DNA of 53,112 bases, counting the filler, from Bipalium vagum (taxonomy: Eukaryota): the NCBI GenBank assembly GCA_037834085.1. It is 3 parts of 3 records of this genome, joined end to end, with 100 filler letters (N's around TTAATTAATTAA, not from the genome) between each part and the next. Parts side by side here need not be neighbours in the genome. Positions count along the whole stretch, not along the records: positions 1 to 16,763 come from JBBMKC010095230.1; 2 more parts are not named here. The stretch is one strand, 5' to 3'. The notes under the pieces were generated by a model. That model searched no databases. It had not been told where the DNA came from and saw only the letters and a list, made by a program, of their open reading frames with translations. Within the stretch, counting starts at the first letter, position 1. Every line of letters begins with the position of its first letter. The translations under genes were made by a program, and so were the position numbers. Positions 48-16,500 of this stretch are shown one piece after another.

Positions 48-236
48 CTACTTAGCCGAAGAAGGGCAAAATGAAGTTAACTTTCTTTTGTCTCTTTTGC
101 GTTTAAGCAAACCACTACCTTCTTGGTGATTGTTGAAAAGGAATTGCAGTGCCAACACTAGCGGATGAGTGGCAAAAATGAAGCTCAACGCCAATGCAAT
201 ACAAAACAACGACATCCAGACGGTAGAAAATAAACT
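48..236 (-). CDS. Possible terminal exon encoding a hydrophobic (TM-like) segment and a basic tail
   Basis: 63 open codons after a TTTTAAG acceptor: SLFSTVWMSLFCIALALSFIFATHPLVLALQFLFNNHQEGSGLLKRKRDKRK...*. GC is higher than in the flanks. Upstream exons could not be joined in phase, and a decayed transposase is an alternative reading. Confidence 0.25.
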   Translation of the reverse strand, partial: SLFSTVWMSLFCIALALSFIFATHPLVLALQFLFNNHQEGSGLLKRKRDKRKLTSFCPSSAK

Positions 237-1616: not shown

Positions 1617-3365
1617 TCACCTATCGTCTAGAAATGGGTTTTTCAAATGCATCCATTGAAGGAGTTGTTGGGCGGCGTCTCGACATATTGGGTCCGGAAG
1701 GAGAGTTCTCTCTAAAAGAAGCATCATGTTCTCCGACATCGGTTTCAAAGGTATAAAGTCGATTTTCTTTTCAATTGCAATCTTGAGGGCAGGATTGGGT
1801 TCATCATAATAAGGAGGTTTACCTACGGAATTTATAGAAAGAGTCTTCATAAAAGATGTGAAAATAATAATAATAATAATAAGAATAAAAATAAGGATAT
1901 GTGAACCGACCCGACAACATTGCCACACATGTGGCCCCGAACGACCAAATATCCGAAGAAAAGTCGAAGCGGCCTTCAATGATGACCTCTGGAGCAAGAT
2001 ACGCAACAGTTCCATGCGTTGACGTTTTAAAGTGGACCGTAGCATTGGAGTGCCCTGACCGAGAAAGTTCATTGTTATTATCTTCCGAACAGAGACCAGG
2101 ACATGTTAATATTCGACCAAGTCCAAAGTCGTACAACCTGACTGTACCGCAATCATCGAGCAGAATATTTTCAGCTTGAGAATGAAAACAAATTATGTCT
2201 GTGTCGAAAATTGTCATTGACTCGACCAAATGAGCACCATTGAGAAAGGTGGATATTTTGGTTTGTGCTTCTCTTTAACATTTTTATGGAGAACCGCGAA
2301 ATAATAAAGTACTTCAAAAGTTACATATTTGAGGAGTGGAAGAATGGAGAGAAGGTGAATCCATGGTGTAAGATTGAGTGGGATAAGCTCTCAAGTGGAG
2401 CAACCCCAATTCGCCTCATTTTTGTCTACATTGTCACTTTCTGAGAATTTTTTATAAATTTCTATTGAATTCAGGCTTGAGTAATTACTTAAGAAAGGTC
2501 AGAGGACATTTTTCGCATAAAACGTTCATGGAAATGCTTTGAACCAAGGACAGCTTTGGAAACGTAAAGCTTTACAATGTTTAGATAATGGAAAACCCTG
2601 CATAAGAGAGTGAAAGGTATTCACAAAAGAGAGCAAGATACGTTTCAAATGTTTGAATTGGACGAGAGACAAACCAAATTTCCGCCTCTCTCAACGATTT
2701 GTGGTCTTTATTCACAGATCAATTACGTTTGATATCGCGGTGGATGATTCCATTGGAATGAAGAAATTTCAACCCTTCAAGAATTCCCTGGCCATAGAAC
2801 ATGATTGTTCCATGGGACACGGTTTCATATTTAATAATCTGATCCAGAGACCCCTAAAATAATGTTAACACAAATTATAGCCTGGTTTCCATCATTTTAG
2901 AATATTATCTCTTTCATTCCTCAGCTCTTTATGATTTTATCATTATTATCATTTGAAGAGACTTTTATTACTATTATTGACAAGGGATAATAAAGAATCT
3001 CATTTAACTGCCACGGGTTTTCAAAATATAAAGTGTTATCAGACTGAATCTCTGTTCCCAAAGCCAGATAAAAACGAAAGGAAATAATAAAAAAATCAAA
3101 AATTCTCTTACAGGAGCATATCTCATTAATACGTAAGACCGTTCTTCGTCCGACCTCTCCCCAATGTACTCCACTATATTCTCGTGGCGGAGACTCTTCC
3201 CAAGTTGGCTCAGATTGTGCTCCACACTTTTCTCGTAATTTTCAATCTGTTTGTGCTGGATTTTCTTCATCACAAAATTTGGATCAAATTCCTTAACCTT
3301 ATAAACCTTGCCATATCCTCCTTGACCAATCTTCTCTTTTGTTTTAAACGTCTTGAAGGCTGCAG
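1617..3365 (-). CDS. Ser/Thr protein kinase domain, STE11/MAP3K (MEKK-like) type; multi-exon; 5' end unresolved
   Basis: Exons ~3365-3112 (KIGQGGYGKVYKV, VMKK, LRHENIVEYIG, LMRYAP), 2853-2727 (GSLDQ...ILEGLKFLHSNGIIHRDIK), 2174-1911 (PENILLD, DFG, GTVAYLAPEVI, SDIWSFGATCVAMLS) and 1822-1617 (GKPPYY...ALKIA...PDPICR...QLL, TGA). GT-AG junctions with compatible phases. The family call rests on motif resemblance only. Confidence 0.9.
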
Positions 3366-3831
3366 CTGAAAAATCAAAAGTCAACGAGGTCAAATCAGAT
3401 TTTGAAAGTCAAATAAAATAAAAAGAGCAAAAACAAAGAAATAGTTCTTTCGAAAAAAATTCGAATCCTTCGGGAGTGTTCTTCCAGTCAAACGTTTGTA
3501 TCAATATTCACTCCTTCGAGATCTCCGGTCGGATCTGATTAAAACAAAAAATAATAAAATTCAAATTATTCTTTATTCGGTTCACCGAGGGAATTGGTTG
3601 GAATAAAATTATTCTTGTTCAAGGAAAGATTTCGATATTATTGTAAAGAGACTCTTAACGCAGTCCAGAGCATTTTTTCAAAGGGTTTTATTTTATTGAT
3701 CTATCTTCAAAATGCTGCACCATTTTAATTTAAGGAAATTGACGAAAGAAAAAATGAGCTTCCAAGCGTCATACCAAATAGTCGTCCGCCGTCTTCAACT
3801 GTTTAATAAAAAGTAAAAGAAAAACGTTGAC

Positions 3832-3907
3832 CCTTACAATTTAAATTGAACAAAAGTTCCCGAACGAAATCTTCATCGGAAGAAGTGAGTAATGCTCTTT
3901 TGTCCTT
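3832..3907 (-). CDS. Probable exon following the last ankyrin repeat (KDKRALLTSSDEDFVRELLFNLNCK..., possible capping/linker helix)
   Basis: TTTTTCAG acceptor at 3908. Open in phase 0 after exon 3998-4096. Candidate phase-1 donors near 3831-3837; if unspliced the frame stops near 3804. Confidence 0.55.
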
Positions 3908-3997
3908 CTGAAAAATATTTTATTTCTTTTTGAAAAATAACAAAAATTAAAAATAATATTCATTTATTATTATATTAATAAGAGAGCACAACAGTAC

Positions 3998-6900
3998 TTC
4001 GTCAAGGGTGTCACACTTGTAATCATGGTCCAGTAAGAACTTAACTACATCGATGTGTCCATTGAGACTGGCAATATTAACAAGATTCCAGTTAGCCTGA
4101 AGTAAACCATTACATGCACAAAGCAATCAATATCGATTTTTTTGCTGAATAGAAACTTGACAATGTCAACATGACCTCTCTGGACAGCCAAATGCATCGG
4201 TCTCCAATTATCCTACATTCATGAACGACTATATATTAATGTAAAATATAAATCAATAACTTCGTCACAAGCCCCCATGTCACAACCCGTCTCAAACAAG
4301 AACTCCACGATGTCAATAAAACCGTTTTCTGCTGCTAAGTGAATGGGCCTCTTATTATTCTGAATTTCTTCTTAAGATTTACTTATTGCAATTAAGTTAA
4401 AAACTTGGTCACAAGCCTCTATCTCACAGTATTTCTCAAACAGGAACTTGACAATGTCAAGATGACCGTTTTCTGCTGCTAGGTGAAGTGGTCGCTTATT
4501 GTCCTGAATTTCTTTTTAATAATTATTTATTACCAAAAAATCAATAACCCAGTCACAAGCCTCAATATCACACCCCTTCTCAAAGAGAAACTTGACAATA
4601 CCAACATGACCTTTTTCAGCAGCCAGGTGACAGGGTCTCCTATCACACTAAATTAATATTTGAAAGTTATTTATTGCAAATAAAACAATAACCCAGTCAC
4701 AAGCTTCAATGTCACAATCCTTCTCACATAAGAACCGGACAACATCAAGATGACCGTTTTGTGCTGCTAAGTGAATCGGATGAAAAGTATACTAAATTGA
4801 TATTTTAAAATTTATTTTCAGAGTAAACCGGATAACCTTGTCACAAACCCCGTTACCAGAACTCTTTTCTAAAAGAAACTGGACAACATCAATATGGCCA
4901 TTTTCTGCAGCCAAAGTGATGGGCCTCCTTCCAAACTGCACTCAATTTTAAACAAATTATTTAGAATAAAACAAGAACTTCGTCAAAAGACTTAATGTCG
5001 CAATTCTTTTCATCCAAAAACTTGAGAATTTCAAGATGACCTCTTTCAGCAGCAAAGTGAATGGGTCTCATTCTACTCTGAATGAAATTTTAAAACCTTT
5101 TATTGAAATTAAATCAATAACTCTGTCACAAGCCTCAATGTCATAACCTTTCTCAAACAGAAACTTGACAATATTGATGTGACCATTTTCTGTAGCCAAG
5201 AGAATGGGTGTCCTTTTAAACTAAAATCAATTTTACAGACGAATCTTTAAAAAAAAATCAATAACGTAATCAAAAGTGTACACGTCACAACCACTGTCAA
5301 TCAAAAAGTTGATAATATCAATGTGACCATTTTCTGCTGCAAAGTGAAGAGGTGTCTTATTTGACTGAAATTATTTTCTAAAATGGTTGATTGAGAATGA
5401 AAATAAGAAAACCCAGTCACAAGCCTCAATGTCGCAACCATTCTCAATTAAGAACTTGACAATATTTAGATGACCTCCTATTACAGCTGAGTGAATGAGA
5501 CTGGAATTGTTCTTTATCTCCTTTAAGAAATTATTATTTATTGAGGAAGAATAAACCTTTATTGGAGCTTCAATATCACATCCCCGGTCAAATAAAAACC
5601 TGGCGACATTTAAATGACCATTTCCTGCAGCTACCTCAATGGGTCTCCGAGAATACTGTTAGGTGTTCATAAATTATTTAATGAAAACAAATGAATAACT
5701 TTGTCAGGGATATCAATGTTACAAGCCTTCTCAAACAAGAATTTAACAATATCAAGATGACAGTTTTTAGCAGCACTGTGAATGGGTCTACAATCGTCCT
5801 GAGCTCATTTTTAAAAATCAATTATTAAGAATAAATCAGCAACCTTATCACATGTCTCAATATCAGAGCCGTGCTCAAACAAGAATCTGACAATATCCAA
5901 ATGACCGTTTTGTGCAGATAAATGAATAAGACTCTTTTTACTCTGAATTTATTTATTTTTATAAAATTTATCTGGGAATTTTAATTACTTTGTCACAAGC
6001 CCCAATATCACAGCCCTTCTGAACCAAGAACTTTACGATATTATTGTGACCTTTAGTAGCAGCTAAATGAATGGGTCTCCTTTTTTTCTGATTAAATTTT
6101 AAAATGTTTTCAAAGGAAAAAGCAAAAAACTTTGTCACTGGCCTCACCATCACAGCCGTGGTCAAAAAGAACTTTGACAACATCAAAATGACCGTTTTGT
6201 GCAGCTAATTGAACTGGACTCCTTTCCATCTAACTTTAGTATAAAATTATTTCTTGAAAACTAATCAAATACTTTATCATGAACATCAATATCACAGCCC
6301 TTTTCAAACAAGAAATTGACGATATCAAGACGACCATATTCTGCAGCCAAGTGAATGGGTCTCCGTCCATTCTAAACTCATTTTCAAAAATTTTCAATGG
6401 AGAAAACATTGATCACTTCATCACAAGCCTCAATGTCACAGCCCTTGTCAAATAAGCATTTGAAATCCTCCAGATGACCTTTTTCAGCAGCTATGTTCAT
6501 GGATACAGTTTTCTGAAATTATTTCTTAAAGTTATTGATTAATCAAATTAAAGACCCAGACATTGTCTTCAGTATTAGAATTCCTTCTCAAAAAGAACTG
6601 GACAACATTAAGATGACCATTTTCCTCAGCCAATTGAAAGGGTCTCTTATTTTTCTGAACTCAGTTTGAAAAATATTTCATTGAGAGTAAATTAATAACT
6701 TCGTCACGGGCTTCACAATCACAACCTTTCTCTAAAAGGAATTTCACAACATCAAGATGACCTTTTCTGGCTGCCAAGTGAATGGGTTTCGAGTTAGTCT
6801 AGATTAAATTTTAACAATTATATGTGGAGAACAAATCAAACACCCAGTCACAAGCTTCCATGTCACTACCGACTTCAATTAAAAACCTCAAAATATCAAT

Positions 6901-9800
6901 ACAGCCATTTTTTGCAGCTACGTGTATGGGTCTCCTACCCAACTGAATTCATATTTCAAAATTTACTTATTGAAAACAAGTCAATACCTCGTCACTTGTG
7001 TGTATGCTGCAACCTTTGTCATACAAAAACTTGACAATATCCAGATGATATCTTGCTGCGGCCAGATGAATGGGTCTTCTGTTTTCCTGAATTCAATTTT
7101 TAAAAAAATTTCTTGGAAACAAATCAATAACCGAGTCACAAGGCTCAATATCGCAACCCTTTTCAAACAAAAACTTGATAATATCAAGATGTCCCTCTTC
7201 AGCTGCCATGTGAACAGATCTTCTTTTATTCTGAATTCCAATTAAGAATTTTTATTGTGAGCAGATAAATGACTTTGTCACAGGCTTCAATATCGCAACC
7301 GTTTTGTAACAAATACTTGACAATATCAATATGACCTTTTGATGAGGCCAAATGAATTGATTCATTTCTATTCTGAAGAAATTCTTAACTTTTATTTCTC
7401 AGACAAAATGAAGAACTTCAAAAAGACAGGTTTTCTCAAACAAAAATTTGAAGACATTCAGATGGCCATTTTCTGCCGCTAAGTGAATTGGTCTCTTATT
7501 CCCCTGAACTCATCTTCAAAAATTATTTATTGAGAACAAATCAATAACTTTGTCACAAGCGTCAATATCATACCCCTTCTCAAATAAAAACTTGACAATA
7601 TCGATATGACCCTTTTCAGAGGCCAAATGAATTGATTCGTCTTTATTCTGAATAAATTTTGAAAGGTTATTTCTCAGTCGAAATCAAGAACTTCAAAGAG
7701 ACAGGACTTCTGAAAAAAAAAGTTGAACACATCCAGGTGACCATTTCCTGCCGCTAAGTGAATTGGTCTCTTATTCCCCTGAACTCATCTTCAAAAATTA
7801 TTTATTGAGAACTAATCTATAACTTTGTCACAAGCGTCAATTTCACAACCATTGTCAACCAAAAACTTCACAACATCAAGATGACCTTCTTTTGCTGCCA
7901 TGTGAATAGGTCTTCTATTATGCTAAAGTCACTTAAAGGTGAATTCTTGACAACAAAATTACAACTTGATCACAAGCCTCAATGTTACAACCATTGTCAA
8001 AGAAGAGTTTTAAAACAGCCAGATGACCTTTTTCTACTGCTATGTGGACAGGTCTCTTCATTTGCTGAATTTCATATTATAAATATTTATTTATTCAATA
8101 TTTACGGAGAAAATAAAAACCCTGTCACAAGCTTCAAGGTCGCAACCACTCTCAATTAAAAATTTCGTAATTTCAATGTGATGATTTTCTTCAGCTAAAT
8201 GAATGGGTCTTTTTCTCTTCTAAATTCAAGCTTATAAATATCATTTTAAGTAAGCCTATAACTTTGTCACCAGAATCCAGGTCACAGCCCTTCTCAAACA
8301 AAAGTTTAACAATATCAATATGACCATTTCGTGCAGCTAAGTGAATAGGTTTGGCATTGGTCTAAATTGGTTTTTAAAATTTATCTTTAGAGAATAAATC
8401 AAGCACCCAGTCACAGGCCTCAATGTCACAATCCTTTTCAATTAGGAACCTGACAATGTTATTGTGATGATTTTCTTCTGCTAAGTGAATGGGTCTCTTT
8501 TTATACTGAATTCAATTTTAAAAATATTCTGATCACAATAAATCACTGACTTTGTTACAAGCCTCAATATTGCAACCCTTATAAAATAGGAATAGGGCAA
8601 TGTTAAAGTGACCTTTTTCTGCAGCTGAGTGAATTGGTCTCATACCTTCCTGAATTTCTTTTTAAAAAACTGTTTTTTGGAATCAAATCAAACACCCTTT
8701 CACAGGCCTCAATGTCGCAACCATTCTCTACTAACAACTTGACAATATTTAGATGGCCTTTTTCTACAGCTAAGTGAATGGGTCTCTTTCCCATCTGAAC
8801 CAAATTTTATAAATAATCTCACTAATACTATCACTAACCATGTCACAAGCCTCAATATTGCAGCCTTTCTCTAAAAAGAATTTAAACATGCTAAAATTAC
8901 CGTTTCCGCCGCTATATGGATGGGTTTGGTTTCCTTCTATTTTAAGATTTGTAATTACCCTTAGACAGTAAGTCAAAACCCTAACCCAGTCACCGGCCTC
9001 AGTGTCAGCACCCTTTTCAAACAAAAACTTGACAATATCAACGTGACCATTTTCTGTAGCAAAGTGGATAGGTTTCACTTTAATCTGAACTCAATTTTAA
9101 AGTTTTTAAAGTAAAAGTCAACAACTTTGTCACCAGACTCAATATTACAACCCTTGTCAAATAAAAACCCCAAGATAGCAACATGACCTTTCTCTGCAGC
9201 CAGGTGAATGGGTTTACAACCAAACTGAATGGATTATTATAAATTATCTGTTGAGAATAAATTAGTAACATTGTCAGAAACATCAATGTCAGCACCCTTG
9301 TCAGACAACAGCCTAATATCAATATGACCATTTTCTGCCGCACCGTGAATGGGTCTCATACCATTCTGGAATGATGTTTAGAATTTGCTTACGGAATAAA
9401 TCAATAACTTTATCACAAGGCTCAATACGACCACCCTGATCAAAGATAAACTTGACAATATCAACATGGCCTTTCTCTGCAGTCAAGTGAATGGGTCTTC
9501 TATTATTCTGAATTCATTTTTGAAAATCATTTCTTAAGAAAAACTCAATAACTTTGTCACAAGATTCAAAGTCGCAACCTCTCTCAATCAACAACTTTAC
9601 AATACAAAGGAAACCCTTTTCGGAGCACAGGTGAATTGGTCTTCTAGTGTCCTACGTACACCATTTCTCAGTTACTCAACACCAACAACCACGTAAATCA
9701 CCTCTCCACATATTTCCAAGTTGAGCGGATTTTCTGCAAAGGCCTTTACTGTTTCAAGTTGACCCTTCTGACATGCAGCAAGCATTGGGTGAGTTCTTTC
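3998..9800 (-). repeat. Tandem array of ~144-nt units (99-nt ankyrin exon + ~45-nt intron), 41 copies
   Basis: Period of about 142-145 nt. Introns share a consensus like GTTATTGATTTATTCTCAATAAATAATTTTTAAAAATGAATTCAG. 18 of 40 introns are exactly 45 nt (range 17-56). Confidence 0.95.
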
Positions 9801-9845
9801 CTACATGAAAAATCACGTCATCCTTTGAACCTTACTATAAACCAT
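3998..9845 (-). CDS. Multi-exon ankyrin-repeat protein: start exon (MVYSK) plus 41 single-repeat exons, about 1350 aa; 3' continuation unresolved
   Basis: Start exon 9831-9845. Repeat exons in transcript order: 9702-9800, 9553-9651, 9409-9507, 9270-9365, 9126-9224, 8986-9084, 8839-8936, 8696-8794, 8551-8649, 8407-8505, 8263-8361, 8121-8219, 7966-8064, 7824-7922, 7692-7778, 7549-7647, 7417-7503, 7274-7372, 7132-7230, 6988-7086, 6844-6942, 6700-6798, 6556-6654, 6417-6512, 6273-6371, 6131-6229, 5989-6087, 5844-5942, 5700-5798, 5557-5655, 5413-5511, 5266-5364, 5122-5220, 4979-5077, 4837-4935, 4693-4791, 4549-4647, 4405-4503, 4261-4359, 4114-4212, 3998-4096. All are bounded by AG/GT at the same phase-0 position. 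Consensus xxxRPIHLAAExGHLDIVKFLFEKGCDIEACDx matches the ankyrin pattern (TPLHxAAxxGHxxIVxxLLxxGAD). No in-frame stops apart from one 98-nt frameshifted exon (8839-8936). Confidence 0.93.
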
Positions 9846-11957
9846 ATATTTATTTGGGCGATGAAACGTCGGTCGCCGTCCAAGAAATAAATATTCAAAA
9901 TGATCGGTAATCGACCATTAGAATTCAAAGAAAATTGTATCCAACCCTTTCGTGGAAAAAATTGTAAATAAATTCATTTATAAAATAATTCGTTTCCGTC
10001 ATCGAAAACTTTTTCCAGTTCGATTTAAAGTTAAAAGATCCTTTCATTAAATCAACCGACCTTTTTATGAGTATTCGTCTTCATAATTGGTTCTGTTCAC
10101 GGAAATATTTAAAAACGGTTCGGAAATCCAGCGAAAATTAAAACAAAGAGAGTTTTCCGCTGGTTTTAAATAAATTCTTTTTAATAAAATCAGACGAAAA
10201 ATACGTTTAAAATATGACAGCAAAAGAATATTCGAAAGAAAAGGAAATGTTATTTAAATAATAATAAAAATAATATTTATTTAACATAATTTAATTAAGA
10301 AGACAAATTAAATTCGAATTTAGATTCAAGAAAACATTTAGTAAAGTAGTGTAGTTTTTAATTTGACGAGTTTCCTTAAATCCCCACTGTATTACTGACA
10401 GAGAATAATTCGTTTGTAAATGATTTAAAACGTGTCTTTAGACAGTTTGACATTTCATAATCTAACTTAATTAAATTTGGTCTAAAATATTAACACAAAA
10501 CTGGATCTGGCTTCCAATACCTTTTGGTTGGGTATACATTACGGAACGAAGCACCACAGATTCAAGTATATTCAAAACCCCATCATAAATTAATGATATA
10601 TTATTTAGATGGTTGAAATTCTATTTAACTGCCGCTAGGTCAAATTTGTTTAAATGTTTTAAATGTAAAATTTCTTTTAACAGGTTTATTTAATTTATAA
10701 AATTATTTTTTCTACTTCAATTACTCCCAGATTTATTTCTGCATTTAAACCCATTTCATGGGTGCTTGTTGATTTTCAATACATTTTTTTCAACTACTCG
10801 GACGACGATATTTTTATCAAAAGATATCACCAATTGACAAAACCCATCGACAGAAAAGCAGCCAAACTATCGAAAAAACATTAATGTGATTGTGACGGAA
10901 TGATTTCAGTCAGATTGTCGAAAAAGAGTTCAAATAATATTGACATTTAAAATTATTAATATGAACATATTAACATTCATTTTGAATTGAAAATAATGCA
11001 CTTATTCCCGACCCAATAAATCAAGGTTACTAAAAATTGAGTTAAATAGTTACTTTAAACAAATGCAAAGTGTTGCACTGATATCGAATGAGATATCTAA
11101 CTAGTTATCCATACACGTACTTCTTAAATATTTTAAAATATTAACTAATACATGTACCAGAACTTAGCATAAATATTCAAAAATGAACAAGACTCAATGT
11201 TCACACCTTTTATCAATGTGTGCCAATCAAATTCATTGGAATTCGACAATCTTTAGAATTCCAATTTGATTTATACAATTCAAAAAATATTACGAACTCC
11301 AACTCATCAAAACTTATTTTAGTAAATTAAACATCCGTTAATTTACAGGTTCTCTATTTTAAAACAATCACCCACTCCAATTATACGAGCCACTCGTTAT
11401 ATGAATAACTTATATTTTCTTAATTTTCTTGGAAAGTCTGTGGCTGTCACATTGAACCTTAACTAAATGGCAAGGTAGTCCATTATAAACATCCCCGCAG
11501 AAGAATAGAAGAATGAACCACCTTTTGTTCGTTTGAAAAACAAGAAGAAGTCTAAAAAGAATGAAGCAGCAGTTATAAATTTAATGAAATTATTATTATT
11601 AGCCATTTCAAATTGGGTAAACGTTTTAAAAATTTATTATGATTAATATTACTCTGATTATTTAAATGGTTATTAATACATAGCCCATTTAATCAACGTA
11701 CTCCACGCACGAACTCTGACCGTGAATTTTTTCTCTCAGTGTAAACAACGTCACACCATCAGTATTATGCTTTTTTCTACATAGGATTACCACGTCACTT
11801 CAAAAAAGTAATACAAACGCAATTAACGACTACCTTTGTTTATTCAACTATCAGAACATTCTTTCCTCAATACCCAACCGGCCCTCTAAACACAACTCAA
11901 CACTATATAAACATCTAACCATTAAACTCTCATCTTCGTCTCAGTTTTCTTAAAGGA

Positions 11958-12330
11958 TTAGGTGTACAACTATGACTCCGACTTTTTTTTAATAAGAAAA
12001 CAAAGACATTTATTACAAATTCTATTTTAAAACATTTATTGAAAATATGTTCCATTGGAAGCTACAACTTTTGCTCACCTTTCAGGTAACGAATGAATTC
12101 CATGAAAGAAAAACTCTGACTCTTTTGATGAAATCCAGGTGTCAATCCAATTTTTGAGGTCTTCAAGGGAACTGACTCGCTGATTGCAAAGAGCGGAACA
12201 AATGGTAAGCGGAAGGAGCGATGTCTGGTGAATCTGGCGGGTGAGGTAGGACTTTGTACCTTCTAAGTAATTATTTACAACTGAATTAACCTGTGGTCTT
12301 GCAAGAAAAGACAAAAAAGCGTACTCATCA
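11958..12330 (-). mobile_element. Mariner (DD34D) transposon remnant, 3' end with TIR
   Basis: Frameshifted VLPHPPDSPDIAPSAYHLFRSLQ (cf. YSPDLAPSDYHLF) and EDLKNWIDTWISSKESEFFFHGIHSLPER*AKVVASNGTYF. TIR-like TTAGGTGTACAAC at 11958. Confidence 0.9.
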
Positions 12331-12779
12331 AAGAAGAACTGCAATGGTCCTCTCCATCTCATTGTATGAAAACATTTCTACCCAGAATCTGTACTTCAGT
12401 ATAATGTTGGTACATTTCTGGGTTGGCAGCAGCCGCTATCTAATCCTTTATGAAAATACAAAATTCCGAGCATTATCGTAACTTTATTCGTTATCCACAT
12501 TTCTAAATTTGTGTCTTTTTATATTTTTTTATCTTTCATGTTTTTAAAGTTAATTTCCATATGATGTGGCACTTTCATTTAGAGTAATTGGAGCTTTTTA
12601 TTAACGTTATCACGAATTATTAGATCTGGCCTAAGTCTTGTGGTTTTCCAAGTTCGATAGGTTTCACGTCTATGTCTAGACTAAATCCAATGTCTTAAGT
12701 ATTTTCAGCAAAAATCTTCTAATACATTGTCATGTTTTATATTGTTACCTAAAGGAAATGATTTACAGTGATTCAATAT

Positions 12780-13545
12780 GTGAACCTGAGTTTATGGTGT
12801 GAAAATTCCAGGTTTTGCCAAAACAGTACAGATCCGTTGTACAACTTAAGGAAAGCTACAATAACTTCACTTAAATATTTTGATGAATAGAAATAAAAGA
12901 TCCACTTTTCCTTCCCCATGTACAAATTGTCTGCCAAATTAAAAATTTCTTTGAATATTTATCAAGGTTGCATTCTTTAAATTTATTAGAAACGTTTCCC
13001 AGTTCATTGGCAGTGCAAATTTTTGTGATGGTATCTGATTAAATTCTGCCTTTACATAGGTCTCACCATCCAAAATGACACAGTCGTATTTGTAAATAAC
13101 TTTATCATATAATTTACGTGCTCTGATTTTTGCTAATTTATTCTGCTTTTCTGTGCGATTTGGTGCAACATTAACTTTATATGAATGCAGTCCAGCCTGT
13201 TTACGGACTTTGTGTACGTAGGACGAAGACATATTCACTTTTTTGGTAACAGCCCTCACCGAAAGTCTTGGATTACGTTTTGGATAAGATTTGAATAAAA
13301 TGATCAAAGAACGAATATCAACACTAGTGGCCGCAAAACACGGGACACATCTGTTCAGCTCATTGAAATCACTGATCCAGCCCGTTGGTGACCGCGGTCC
13401 TGATATTCTCATTTGACTCACGTGATGTGAAGCTTGATAAATATTATTTTCAATGTTTTCATTGCTTTATGTTATCCAGAACATTGGGAACACGATTTCA
13501 TTTATTTCACATATAACCATTTTCATTCTTCTGCCATTTTGACAT
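12780..13545 (-). mobile_element. Degenerate Tc1/mariner transposase, DD37E (ITmD37E-like) type
   Basis: ORF 12939-13421 has HTH-like RNPRLSVRAVTKKVNMSSSYVHK, then AKIRARKLY and CVILDGETYVKAEFNQIP (cf. MDDETYVKADF.QLP of DD37E elements). Downstream frameshifted KFLIWQTICTWG and VLFWQNL. Boundaries approximate. Confidence 0.75.
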
Positions 13546-13554
13546 TTTTTTTTA

Positions 13555-16500
13555 TTCCAAAGATTCTCCGGCATGGAAACTAAAATCTTCAACCGTGCTC
13601 TGCAGACCACCGGTTTTTTGTCAATCACACTGTCCACGAGTCAGAGGGGCCAGTTGGATAGGCTGCATCCTCTGTTGACAAAATCAACATTTCTCATCAT
13701 CATCTCGCAATTTGGAATTGTCCCTACTTCTGAAAGGTGAAATTAAATGTTTGTGCAATTAAATCGCATTTAATTAACTCCGCAATATTCGGCCTCGGTG
13801 AGCACTGTCACGCTTGATGATTATAACAATTGAACAATTCTACACATCCAAAGGACAAATAATTAATTGACAATGACAAAGAGAAATAATAATGAAAATA
13901 TCGAAGAAGGATTCTGTTACTGTTAATATTGTCCGTCGGGGACAATGAGGTTTGACTTCTTTTGTTTGGAGGTAATCCGAGGATGAATTCCGTTAGTCTA
14001 ACAAAACAAAGGATGTGGTCAATACGAAGAGTCTCTTTGTAGACCTTAATATGTGCTGGGTTGACAACATCACGCAAATATTTATATCAGTTTATTCTGC
14101 CTGCGAAGATAAAAGTCAGTTTACTCTAGGGGCAAATAACGATTATTACCTCTTAGCTAAGCTTCATTGGGGTGGGGAGTAGCCAATTTTACGAACTATT
14201 TCTATTATTCTTGAAGGAAACCCGCAGTGAATACCTTTTTAACAGCTATTGTATTTTAAACATTAAATATATTTTTATGTGGTACTATTTTCATCTATTG
14301 AAATGTGAAATGCTTAGCTCACCCTTACCTATCGTGTTTATTAAATTTATCGTACTAAAAACTGTTTTCTGTTGAATCAAAACAACCCCAATAAACGCTT
14401 ATCTCGATTCTCACCAAAGTGATTCAACACAGTCACAAAAAACCCTTCATTACATTTATAACCATTCTCAATAACACATTCAATAATCACACGGACCACA
14501 GTCAATATTTGCAGCTCACAGAAAAGTACACCAAAGGTTCTGAATATATCTCTCATATCAACCAAATCGAGCATCCGTTATGCCAAATGACAATTGATCG
14601 AAACGTTAATCAAATGTCAATCCAATAATATGAAATTAGGTAGAATACCAATTAAATTCTCGTACCCTCAGCAAAATAAGTCCTCGAGTCATTTTTAAAG
14701 TAAGACGGTTTTACGTGCCCACTTTTAACAATACCTTAATGAGGTTTCATAAAACATGTTTACTTCAATCACGAAGAGAAACTCAACGTTCTTTTACAAG
14801 GCTGAGGATGCTCTTTTTGTCACACTATTTCCCCTAACATAAAGGGGTCACCGAATTATTTAAAGTTCCCTTTTGAAATCGAATTAATCGATGTCAAACA
14901 TGTTTGGACGAAAACCGTCCTTTGAGTGAGGTCACATTTAAGACAAGCTAACGGCGGACTCCGACAAAAAGGGAAGTACCTTCTCAACCACAAACGACGG
15001 AAGAAGTTGTTCAGCAGGACATGGTCAGGGCCAGTTCCGGAAAGAATCATTTCATCATGAAGATTGTTTATCTTCTTGTGAAACCTGAGAGAGTGGCAAT
15101 TGAAGCTCACTCCTTCCAAAGGCTCATGTTTCGGTATAATTATCCGGGATACTTTTTCAAGCACCCTAGCTTGCTGTACCATAAAATATGATAGTAACTT
15201 CAATCTTGAAGCGACAAAAAGGTTCTGACCATCAGAAATGATGCACAAAGAGAAAGCAAGGCGGAAGCCACCTTTTTTAACACAAGATAGATATGAAATA
15301 TGAAAGGTCGTTTTATTGTAAGCCGCGCTCCGTTTGCGGACACAAATACCTCAATGAAAGGGGCACTGGAAATGCAACTGATCATTCAAACCAGAGGCCA
15401 AAGCTGGAGGATATTTTTTTCTCCGCAAAAATGGAGAGGTTGGATTCCTAACGCTGCCTCGAATACGACCTCCGATCATGTATGATCCACTTCGATCCAC
15501 CGTCAGTCCTCATACCATTTACACAGTAGCCCATGAGAGCTGGCCACATGTACGGTCGGTCTGGTCGACGTCCAACCGTGTCTCACCTCCGTGACTGTGA
15601 CCGACCCCTCGACAATTGATCCATTGATAACGTTTTGAATGTCTTCCTTCGTCTTTGCCTCGAAGGAATTTTCTCGAAGGGGATGTTGATCAATTAAATG
15701 TTAGTTTTGATGTTGCTAGCGGAAGGTAATGATGATCATTGAGGACTGCGGTGATTGAAAGGGATTAATGAATGATTTCAATATTGGCGCACGTACGTCT
15801 TTCATATGTCATTTTCATTTCCTTGAATGAGCTCTGATTTCAAAAGCCCTTAAAAACCACTTTGAGCTAATAAAGAAATTGAAGTCACCATCTCTTCTTA
15901 GTGGACAAACCAAGGACGACAATAGAAAACAAGACCTCAGACATTGGAGGGGTATTCCTCACTTCCTTTCTAATTGTAAAATCCTTCGCAAAGCTCTCCA
16001 TCCGAGAATAAGGCTAGGCGGTCCATATTCAATTAGTAGACCTTTGAAAGAAGGGTTCGAGTCCGGGTCGGGTTTTTCATCAGCCTGATTAATTGGGGAG
16101 ACTGCAGAGACAACAACCCTCGTTTGGCCCACTGGACCATAGTGAATTAATTCAATTATATTCCACCGGTTTTCAATCTATTCAACATTACTCCTTCTGA
16201 CACTTTCCCCCTTGTATCTCCATCATCTGGTCGTCAAACGTTACCACAATACACAGGGATTCTATGAGATGTCCACGCCATGCCTTTGTATGACAGCATG
16301 GTCTTACAGTGGTCTGTCCTTCAAACTGGGAAAGATTTTAAAGACTGAATTTACGTCCCTTTCCCATAGTAAACTTTTCAAAACATCCAGCGAAAGATAA
16401 CGCCTGTCTCCTCTGTCAAAGTTACCCAAGGATCATTTGTCACTAGAGCCGACTTTGACATGATTCTGGAGAACCACAAAGCAGTTTTCAAAAAAGTATT

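Follow-up and report, generated by a model that had tools for sequence, protein, structure and literature searches.

Proteins that join ankyrin repeats to a kinase are already known, and so are ankyrin genes with one repeat per exon. ILK and TNNI3K, like the locus described here, place an ankyrin interaction domain at the N-terminus and fuse it to a kinase or pseudokinase, while DAPK1, RIPK4/ANKK1, LRRK2 and RNase L combine the same two elements in other domain orders; these known ankyrin-kinase proteins carry roughly 4-12 repeats. Long uninterrupted solenoids are found in canonical ankyrins (24 repeats) and in NOMPC (29 repeats), and in vertebrate ankyrin genes many repeats are encoded by single 99-nt phase-0 exons. 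Here, we analyse a stretch of DNA of 53,112 nucleotides from the planarian Bipalium vagum (GenBank assembly GCA_037834085.1), called the window below, in which 41 one-repeat ankyrin exons precede a protein kinase. We consider it probable, from sequence comparison, that the two form one minus-strand gene (~9845 to 1617) belonging to a lineage-specific ankyrin-kinase multigene family, whose solenoid would regulate the kinase.

An ankyrin array continuous with a kinase

Coordinates refer to the whole stretch, the gene being read on the minus strand of contig C95230, and the window is AT-rich, with a GC content of 0.22-0.43. Tandem Repeats Finder (TRF) detects a 144-nt periodicity over ~4.2-8.8 kb; combined with nhmmer and a full exon table, it gives 41 ankyrin units with a period of ~144 nt from 9800 to 3998, 40 of them recovered by a hidden Markov model made from strict units and the divergent first unit completing the total. 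Exact open phase-0 exons of 99 nt between AG and GT account for 37 of the 41 units, and two more are 96 nt long and in frame (9365-9270 and 6512-6417). The introns of the array are homologous and measure 32-56 nt, except the last one (4113-4097). A previous interpretation of this locus, the sequence-only reading, had counted 41 units with homologous introns, which is borne out; its description of all exons as symmetric and phase-0 applies to 39 of the 41, the exceptions being unit 7 (98 nt) and unit 15 (GA donor); these two and the 17-nt last intron contradict its statement that every GT/AG is retained. The assignment to the ankyrin family is secured by unit 38, which matches Pfam PF00023 (clan Ank) over residues 5-32 with E=2.7e-7, and by the array consensus, which retains the diagnostic pattern P-I-H-x-A-A-x-x-G-H and V-K-F-L-x-x-x-G; ankyrin and kinase searches were run exon by exon, and the N-cap exon alone found no match in Pfam. 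Measured over 15 arrays of the family described below, exons have a GC content of 0.38 and array introns of 0.21. In 310 of these introns, the donor consensus is GT(T/A)ATTGATT instead of the common GTRAGT, position +3 being T in 55% and position +5 in 74%; the non-array introns of these genes begin with GTAA or GTAT.

The sequence-only reading had also placed a co-oriented kinase ~0.6 kb downstream of the array and had supposed the two to be linked. The first kinase exon, K1, does begin 632 nt past the last ankyrin exon. It lacks a start codon; an AG precedes it and it is entered in phase 1, the missing base being supplied by a short linker exon, so that the exon phases fit throughout from array to linker to kinase. 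The pattern of this linker (AG, 69 nt plus T, then the donor) is kept in 11 of 11 paralogues, with GTAAG, GTAAT or GTGAG as donor, and since CT or CC comes after the K1 acceptor, a Ser codon is formed at the junction in all 11. Moreover, the order N-cap, array, C-cap, linker and K1 to K4 is found again on at least 10 contigs. On these phases and this conservation, array and kinase are linked physically and almost certainly transcriptionally too; comparison among the paralogues establishes the predicted ankyrin-kinase fusion as one gene.

An independent check of the assembly was made with Logan contigs from the only public run holding this DNA, which is probably the assembly's own source sample. 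They tile 3900-9850 at even depth with zero differences, including at the three lesions considered below, and since they reproduce the locus in this way, the misassembly that the sequence-only reading had allowed for is excluded. Three Logan joints with short sides (21-26 letters) stem from paralogues or from words that recur, and we do not count them as deletion variants. No sequence variants were seen in the Logan contigs within this single sample.

The assignment of the downstream exons to the eukaryotic protein kinases (PF00069) is supported by consecutive profile coverage from K1 to K3 (Table 1) and by the reading of all motifs: GQGGYG, VMKK, HRDIKPEN, DFG, APE and DIWSFG are all present in the window copy, and their counterparts are invariant or nearly so across paralogues. 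K4, which alone has no match in Pfam or the Protein Data Bank (PDB), is conserved within the family only, at 49-61% in 7 paralogues. The stop codon is followed ~70 nt further on by AATAAA. Between DFG and APE lie 44 residues, a length due to an insert of ~20 residues in the activation segment, family-specific and rich in Ser, Thr, Asp and Asn, which keeps a near constant length in nine paralogues and varies in sequence. As STE-group kinases recur among the closest solved relatives of the individual exons, the kinase appears STE-like and possibly MAP3K-like, its resemblance to ASK1 being tentative. The MAP3K label of the sequence-only reading agrees with K2, which is closest to ASK1, and sits less well with the other exons, which are closest to MEK1, STE20-type kinases or CDK2. 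An (AAT)n microsatellite of 10.7 copies occupies 1863-1894, within the K3-K4 intron.

The product would probably be a cytoplasmic protein of ~1,650 residues, made up of the N-cap, 39 internal repeats, the C-cap, a linker of 23 residues and a Ser/Thr kinase of the STE group. None of the exons shows a signal peptide or a membrane segment, for which reason we reject an extracellular receptor.

Table 1. Features of the ankyrin-kinase gene in the window, with the number of matches of single exons in the assembly and the closest solved relatives of the kinase exons
Feature	Position	Strand	Description	Genome matches	Closest solved relatives
Candidate start codon ATG	9843-9845	-	closes a short 5' exon or lies close to its end; GT directly after
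N-cap ankyrin exon (unit 1)	9702-9800	-	99 nt between AG and GT; diverges from internal units	26, 52-87% identity, always heading an array
Units 2-40	4114-9651	-	internal ankyrin exons with 32-56 nt homologous introns
Unit 7	8839-8936	-	98 nt, one base short; if included, the frame shifts and meets a stop
Unit 15	7680-7778	-	99 nt; donor GA, not GT, then TGA at once
Intron between units 40 and 41	4097-4113	-	17 nt; Logan contig over 4062-4842 agrees
C-cap ankyrin exon (unit 41)	3998-4096	-		27
Linker exon	3838-3907	-	70 nt, phase 0 to phase 1; TTTCAG acceptor; one base into a codon before GTAAG
Kinase exon K1	3112-3365	-	GQGGYG glycine loop, beta-3 Lys in VMKK, alpha-C; Pfam Pkinase E=2.7e-10, positions 1-80	33	Aurora A (single exon); CDK2, then MAP4K3, TAO3, ASK1 (profile)
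Kinase exon K2	2727-2853	-	ends with HRDIK; Pfam Pkinase E=2.9e-8, positions 83-125		ASK1/MAP3K5, E=3.4e-6 (single exon)
Kinase exon K3	1911-2174	-	PENILL, DFG, APE, DIWSFG; Pfam Pkinase E=3.8e-12, positions 127-191	39	STK25, OSR1, SPAK (single exon); MEK1, STK25 (profile)
Kinase exon K4	1617-1822	-	C-lobe, GKPPYY...; stop TGA at 1619-1617

A family with varying repeat numbers

The assembly searched for relatives of this gene comprises 440.8 Mb in 272,664 contigs and is highly fragmented. A segment of 531 nt from the array, with its introns, is found at more than 170 places on more than 30 contigs with 65-76% identity, and single caps and kinase exons recur some tens of times (Table 1). For 19 of the 27 C-caps, a K1 follows downstream on the same strand of the contig; most of the remaining eight are found in the first ~1.1 kb of a contig or on contigs whose length is not known. 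The search for paralogous arrays suggested by the sequence-only reading has been fruitful: there are many, joined to the same kinase output with very different repeat numbers. From these counts, the family would have roughly 25-40 genes, with ~3 to 41 repeats. Arrays complete from N-cap to C-cap contain ~3, 7, 9, 10, 16, 17, 19, 21, 26, 28, 39, 41, 41 and 41 repeats, the values 3, 7, 9 and one of the 41 being estimates from the cap-to-cap distance. Across 15 arrays, 337 of 365 units are intact open exons of 99 nt between AG and GT; ~15 of the 365 are in-frame length variants and ~8 are truly dead, through loss of the acceptor or donor or through internal deletion. In the literature, we found nothing relevant on an expansion of ankyrin-kinases in planarians or flatworms.

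Some members call for separate description. Contig C216135 (34.5 kb) carries two of them tail to tail, one on the plus strand at ~4587-14823 and one on the minus strand at ~33325-24508. Units are separated by an insertion of 1.2 kb in its plus-strand array and by a gap of 1.1 kb in the array of C23589. The last two ankyrin exons of C254732 are 100% and 98% identical to those of the C216135 plus-strand gene and the intron between them is identical, but the kinase exons differ; a very recent partial duplication, a gene conversion or haplotype contigs are possible explanations.

Comparison of units shows how such arrays are built. Nearest units are 88% identical at codon positions 1+2, 79% at position 3 and 76% in their introns, which points to exons held by selection and introns drifting like silent sites; the homology of the introns identifies the exon-plus-intron cassette as the unit of duplication. 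The mean identity within an array is ~63%. The units of the window gene are closer to units of other genes than to one another, and they align one to one and in order with those of the plus-strand gene of C216135: the units are therefore old, and the genes were duplicated whole. Recent changes concern blocks of 2-11 units, which are duplicated inside several arrays at 94-100% identity; the window's own tandem duplication of two units (275 nt, 7247-7886) shows 84%. Unequal recombination inside arrays would gain and lose such blocks, and could in this way have left members with ~3 to 41 repeats on the same kinase.

Selection was estimated from the ratio of nonsynonymous to synonymous substitutions (dN/dS, or omega), which is 0.34-0.37 for ankyrin exons and 0.39-0.49 for the kinase when computed by simple pairwise counting on nearest-neighbour pairs picked by identity, a crude method. 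At the predicted binding-surface positions, which we take to be exon positions 33, 1, 2, 3, 11, 12 and 31 after consensus-designed ankyrin proteins, omega reaches 0.56 (0.45-0.68), versus 0.30 (0.27-0.34) in the framework. The highest value for a single position is 1.22 at position 31, with a bootstrap range of 0.72-2.71, and no position is reliably above 1. Since the ratio stays below 1 even at the predicted binding positions, positive selection is not demonstrated; these values point to fast evolution with relaxed purifying selection. The many paralogous arrays, which share one kinase output and differ widely in repeat number, are features of receptor-like families with fast birth and death.

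Gene, pseudogene or repertoire

The reading that we favour assigns a role to each part of the protein. By analogy with repeat sensors and with other ankyrin-kinases, we infer that the solenoid is the regulatory module, that it would bind partners or ligands and gate the kinase, and that the targets differ by paralogue, each reading different intracellular partners. Binding would control activation through the long Ser/Thr-rich activation segment, and the output may enter a stress or defence cascade of the mitogen-activated protein kinase (MAPK) type. Several points weigh against it. The role as a sensor and as a MAPK input is deduced from architecture. The subfamily of the kinase is ambiguous, because the closest solved relative differs from one exon to the next, and a phmmer search with K3 against 1.84e9 representative proteins returned no match below 1e-30, the best ones being unrelated multi-kinase or plant receptor-kinase predictions; a word-index search with the K3 open frame found no relative, and the ESM Atlas gave only generic kinase clusters. 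Among public runs, the sequence was found in one DNA-like run only and in no RNA run. The start of the gene is a candidate: the ATG at 9845-9843, at the edge of a putative 5' exon, gives a 42-nt intron to the N-cap exon (30 nt for the alternative of the sequence-only reading), and we take it as the best one by analogy with the close paralogue C70307, which has ATG followed by GTAAGT at the equivalent site; more distant paralogues have no ATG there. The dN/dS values suffer from the crudeness mentioned above. Finally, the window copy carries three lesions of frame or splicing, in units 7 and 15 and in the intron between units 40 and 41 (Table 1).

These lesions sustain the strongest alternative, namely that the window copy is a recently disabled pseudogene in a functional family, with open exons that have not yet decayed. 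The three are independent and all are present in the Logan contigs, that of unit 7 in a contig that covers 7783-9850 without difference. The last intron, which measures 41-53 nt in 14 paralogues, is with its 17 nt probably too short for splicing. In addition, introns of 45 nt make intron definition probable, in which case the loss of a donor should lead to retention of the intron and not to skipping of the exon. Against this, the other 38 ankyrin exons, the linker and K1 to K4 are all open and flanked by canonical splice sites, the catalytic motifs are intact, and each lesion lies in a unit that can be skipped in frame. Unit 15, located within the two-unit tandem duplication, also has an in-frame cryptic GT 15 nt upstream of the exon end. 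Comparable single dead units occur in 5 other paralogues, which makes six genes with the window gene. An ankyrin-kinase protein would be made from the window copy only if units 7, 15 and 40 or 41 were skipped or if cryptic sites were used; failing that, this copy would be a very recently disabled member of a family otherwise under selection. We judge rescue and very young pseudogene to be about evenly balanced for the copy itself, and the pseudogene as an account of the locus to fall a little short of an even chance.

The sequence-only reading had gone further than regulation by a solenoid, proposing a diversified recognition system whose symmetric exons could be skipped, duplicated or exchanged in frame, giving combinatorial binders coupled to a kinase; alternative splicing or somatic recombination would be the mechanism. 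Its arithmetic is correct: the internal exons being all phase 0-0, any subset keeps the frame and any internal unit can be removed without breaking it. In its favour are the large family with ~3-41 repeats and recent block duplications, and predicted binding positions that evolve faster than the framework. The array donors, of which 55% begin with GTT, look weak, and weak sites are typical of cassette exons; the ~8 dead units belong to genes in which all other units, and the kinase exons sampled, are open, a state that could be tolerated only if single units are dispensable. There are also precedents in brown algae (PMC3341825; PMC11378527). However, no RNA run among the public runs holds the sequence, close paralogues are colinear unit by unit, which argues against intense shuffling, and no position has an omega reliably above 1. 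Selector or docking elements are not apparent in the 45-nt AT-rich introns, the single sample shows no variants, and nothing ties the family to immunity. On this balance, we find a combinatorial system unlikely.

To a similar degree, we think it improbable that the solenoid is mechanical or structural (a spring, a tether or a cytoskeletal scaffold, comparable to the 24-29-repeat domains of ankyrins and NOMPC) and that the kinase reports its state in place of varied ligands. Up to 41 repeats exceed one superhelical turn, as is known of ankyrin solenoids in general, three complete arrays reach the maximum of ~41, and selection is purifying overall; but ~3-41 repeats on the same kinase are hard to square with one mechanical specification, and the family is large and fast-evolving. 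Somewhat less probable again is the boldest extension of the recognition idea, a planarian intracellular immune-like repertoire made of dozens of ankyrin-array kinases, with spliced and germ-line-varied exons and a MAPK-type output; if true, animals would have a counterpart to the receptor families with one repeat per exon that have been proposed in brown algae. Finally, two adjacent genes or an assembly artefact can be dismissed as highly improbable, since the fragmentation of the assembly, which favours them, is outweighed by the linker supplying the phase-1 base of a K1 without start codon, by the recurrent N-cap-to-K4 order and by the Logan contigs.

Other elements of the window and of the assembly were recorded along with the ankyrin-kinase gene. 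The region 11900-13700 is a high-copy interspersed repeat (1,289 candidate places), with two sub-parts (~11957-12303 and ~12793-13281) that are 81-90% identical to other contigs; its open reading frames (ORFs) resemble a decayed transposase with a helix-turn-helix, without significant Pfam match, and the Pfam search on ORFs at 12-16 kb gave nothing significant. The segment 14700-16763, with a GC content of 0.42 that is above the rest of the window, is single-copy save for its last 260 nt (C247918, 93%) and contains no long ORF and no Pfam match. Elsewhere in the assembly, an intronless mitochondrial HSP70 shares 88% identity with the mortalin-like protein of Dugesia japonica and 81-83% with those of other lophotrochozoans, as fits a planarian-like flatworm distinct from D. 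japonica. Contigs C39170, C187784 and C206465 bear several HSP70 paralogues with a single in-frame TAA in otherwise full-length matches, which could reflect introns, pseudogenes or assembly errors.

The family among known systems

The kinase resembles ASK1/MAP3K5 and other STE kinases (MEK1, MST/STK25, OSR1/SPAK, TAO and MAP4K3) in its GxGxxG loop, beta-3 Lys, HRDIK, DFG, APE and DIWSxG motifs, but the matches are weak (E from 1e-5 to 1e-10 per exon) and designate no single subfamily. STE kinases usually have HRDIKG(A/D)N, whereas the family has HRDIKPEN and its 44-residue span from DFG to APE; ASK1, moreover, has no ankyrin repeats. Membership of the ILK/TNNI3K type (TKL group) is not supported: no kinase exon has the known ankyrin-kinases, these two included, among its 60 best solved relatives, and the domain order is all that the family has in common with this type. 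Known ankyrin-kinases are also single conserved genes with far shorter arrays than the 41 repeats found here, and not a variable-array family of 25-40 members. As for the ankyrins and NOMPC, they differ from the family by having no kinase, a fixed repeat number and introns that are not short homologous copies.

Among systems with variable arrays, fungal NLR-like proteins are intracellular and join arrays of ankyrin, TPR or WD40 repeats to a signalling domain, the repeat number varying by unequal recombination. The planarian family shares with them a variable tandem-repeat sensor joined to a signalling domain, but it has no NACHT or NB-ARC. In the fungal genes, a repeat does not usually have an exon to itself, and identity between the repeats of the hypervariable arrays is very high, versus a mean of ~63% within arrays here.

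The closest parallel in gene structure is offered by the candidate receptors of brown algae, LRR-ROCO and NB-ARC-TPR, for which one repeat per exon, rapid birth and death and alternative splicing have been reported (PMC3341825; PMC11378527). The planarian genes likewise present one repeat per exon with symmetric phases, and they form a multigene family in which the repeat number varies, units have recently been gained and lost, and a signalling domain lies downstream. They differ in the nature of the parts, the repeats being ankyrin and not LRR or TPR, and the output a kinase and not ROC-COR or NB-ARC. They differ also in their mode of change: close paralogues are colinear and vary by duplications and deletions of blocks, with none of the shuffling that obscures paralogy, and diversifying selection at binding positions was not detected with our crude pairwise method.

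Several traits of the family appear to be undescribed: its size (~25-40 genes) combined with as many as 41 repeats per kinase, the more than tenfold range of repeat number among paralogues and the lack of a detectable relative among 1.8 billion representative proteins. It provides a clean natural example of an exon-plus-intron cassette that expands a solenoid domain, in which dead cassettes persist inside otherwise intact arrays; since planarians are tractable by RNA interference, regeneration and infection models, the question of variable recognition can be put directly to the test. We regard the family as a lineage-specific variant of the known ankyrin-kinase architecture.

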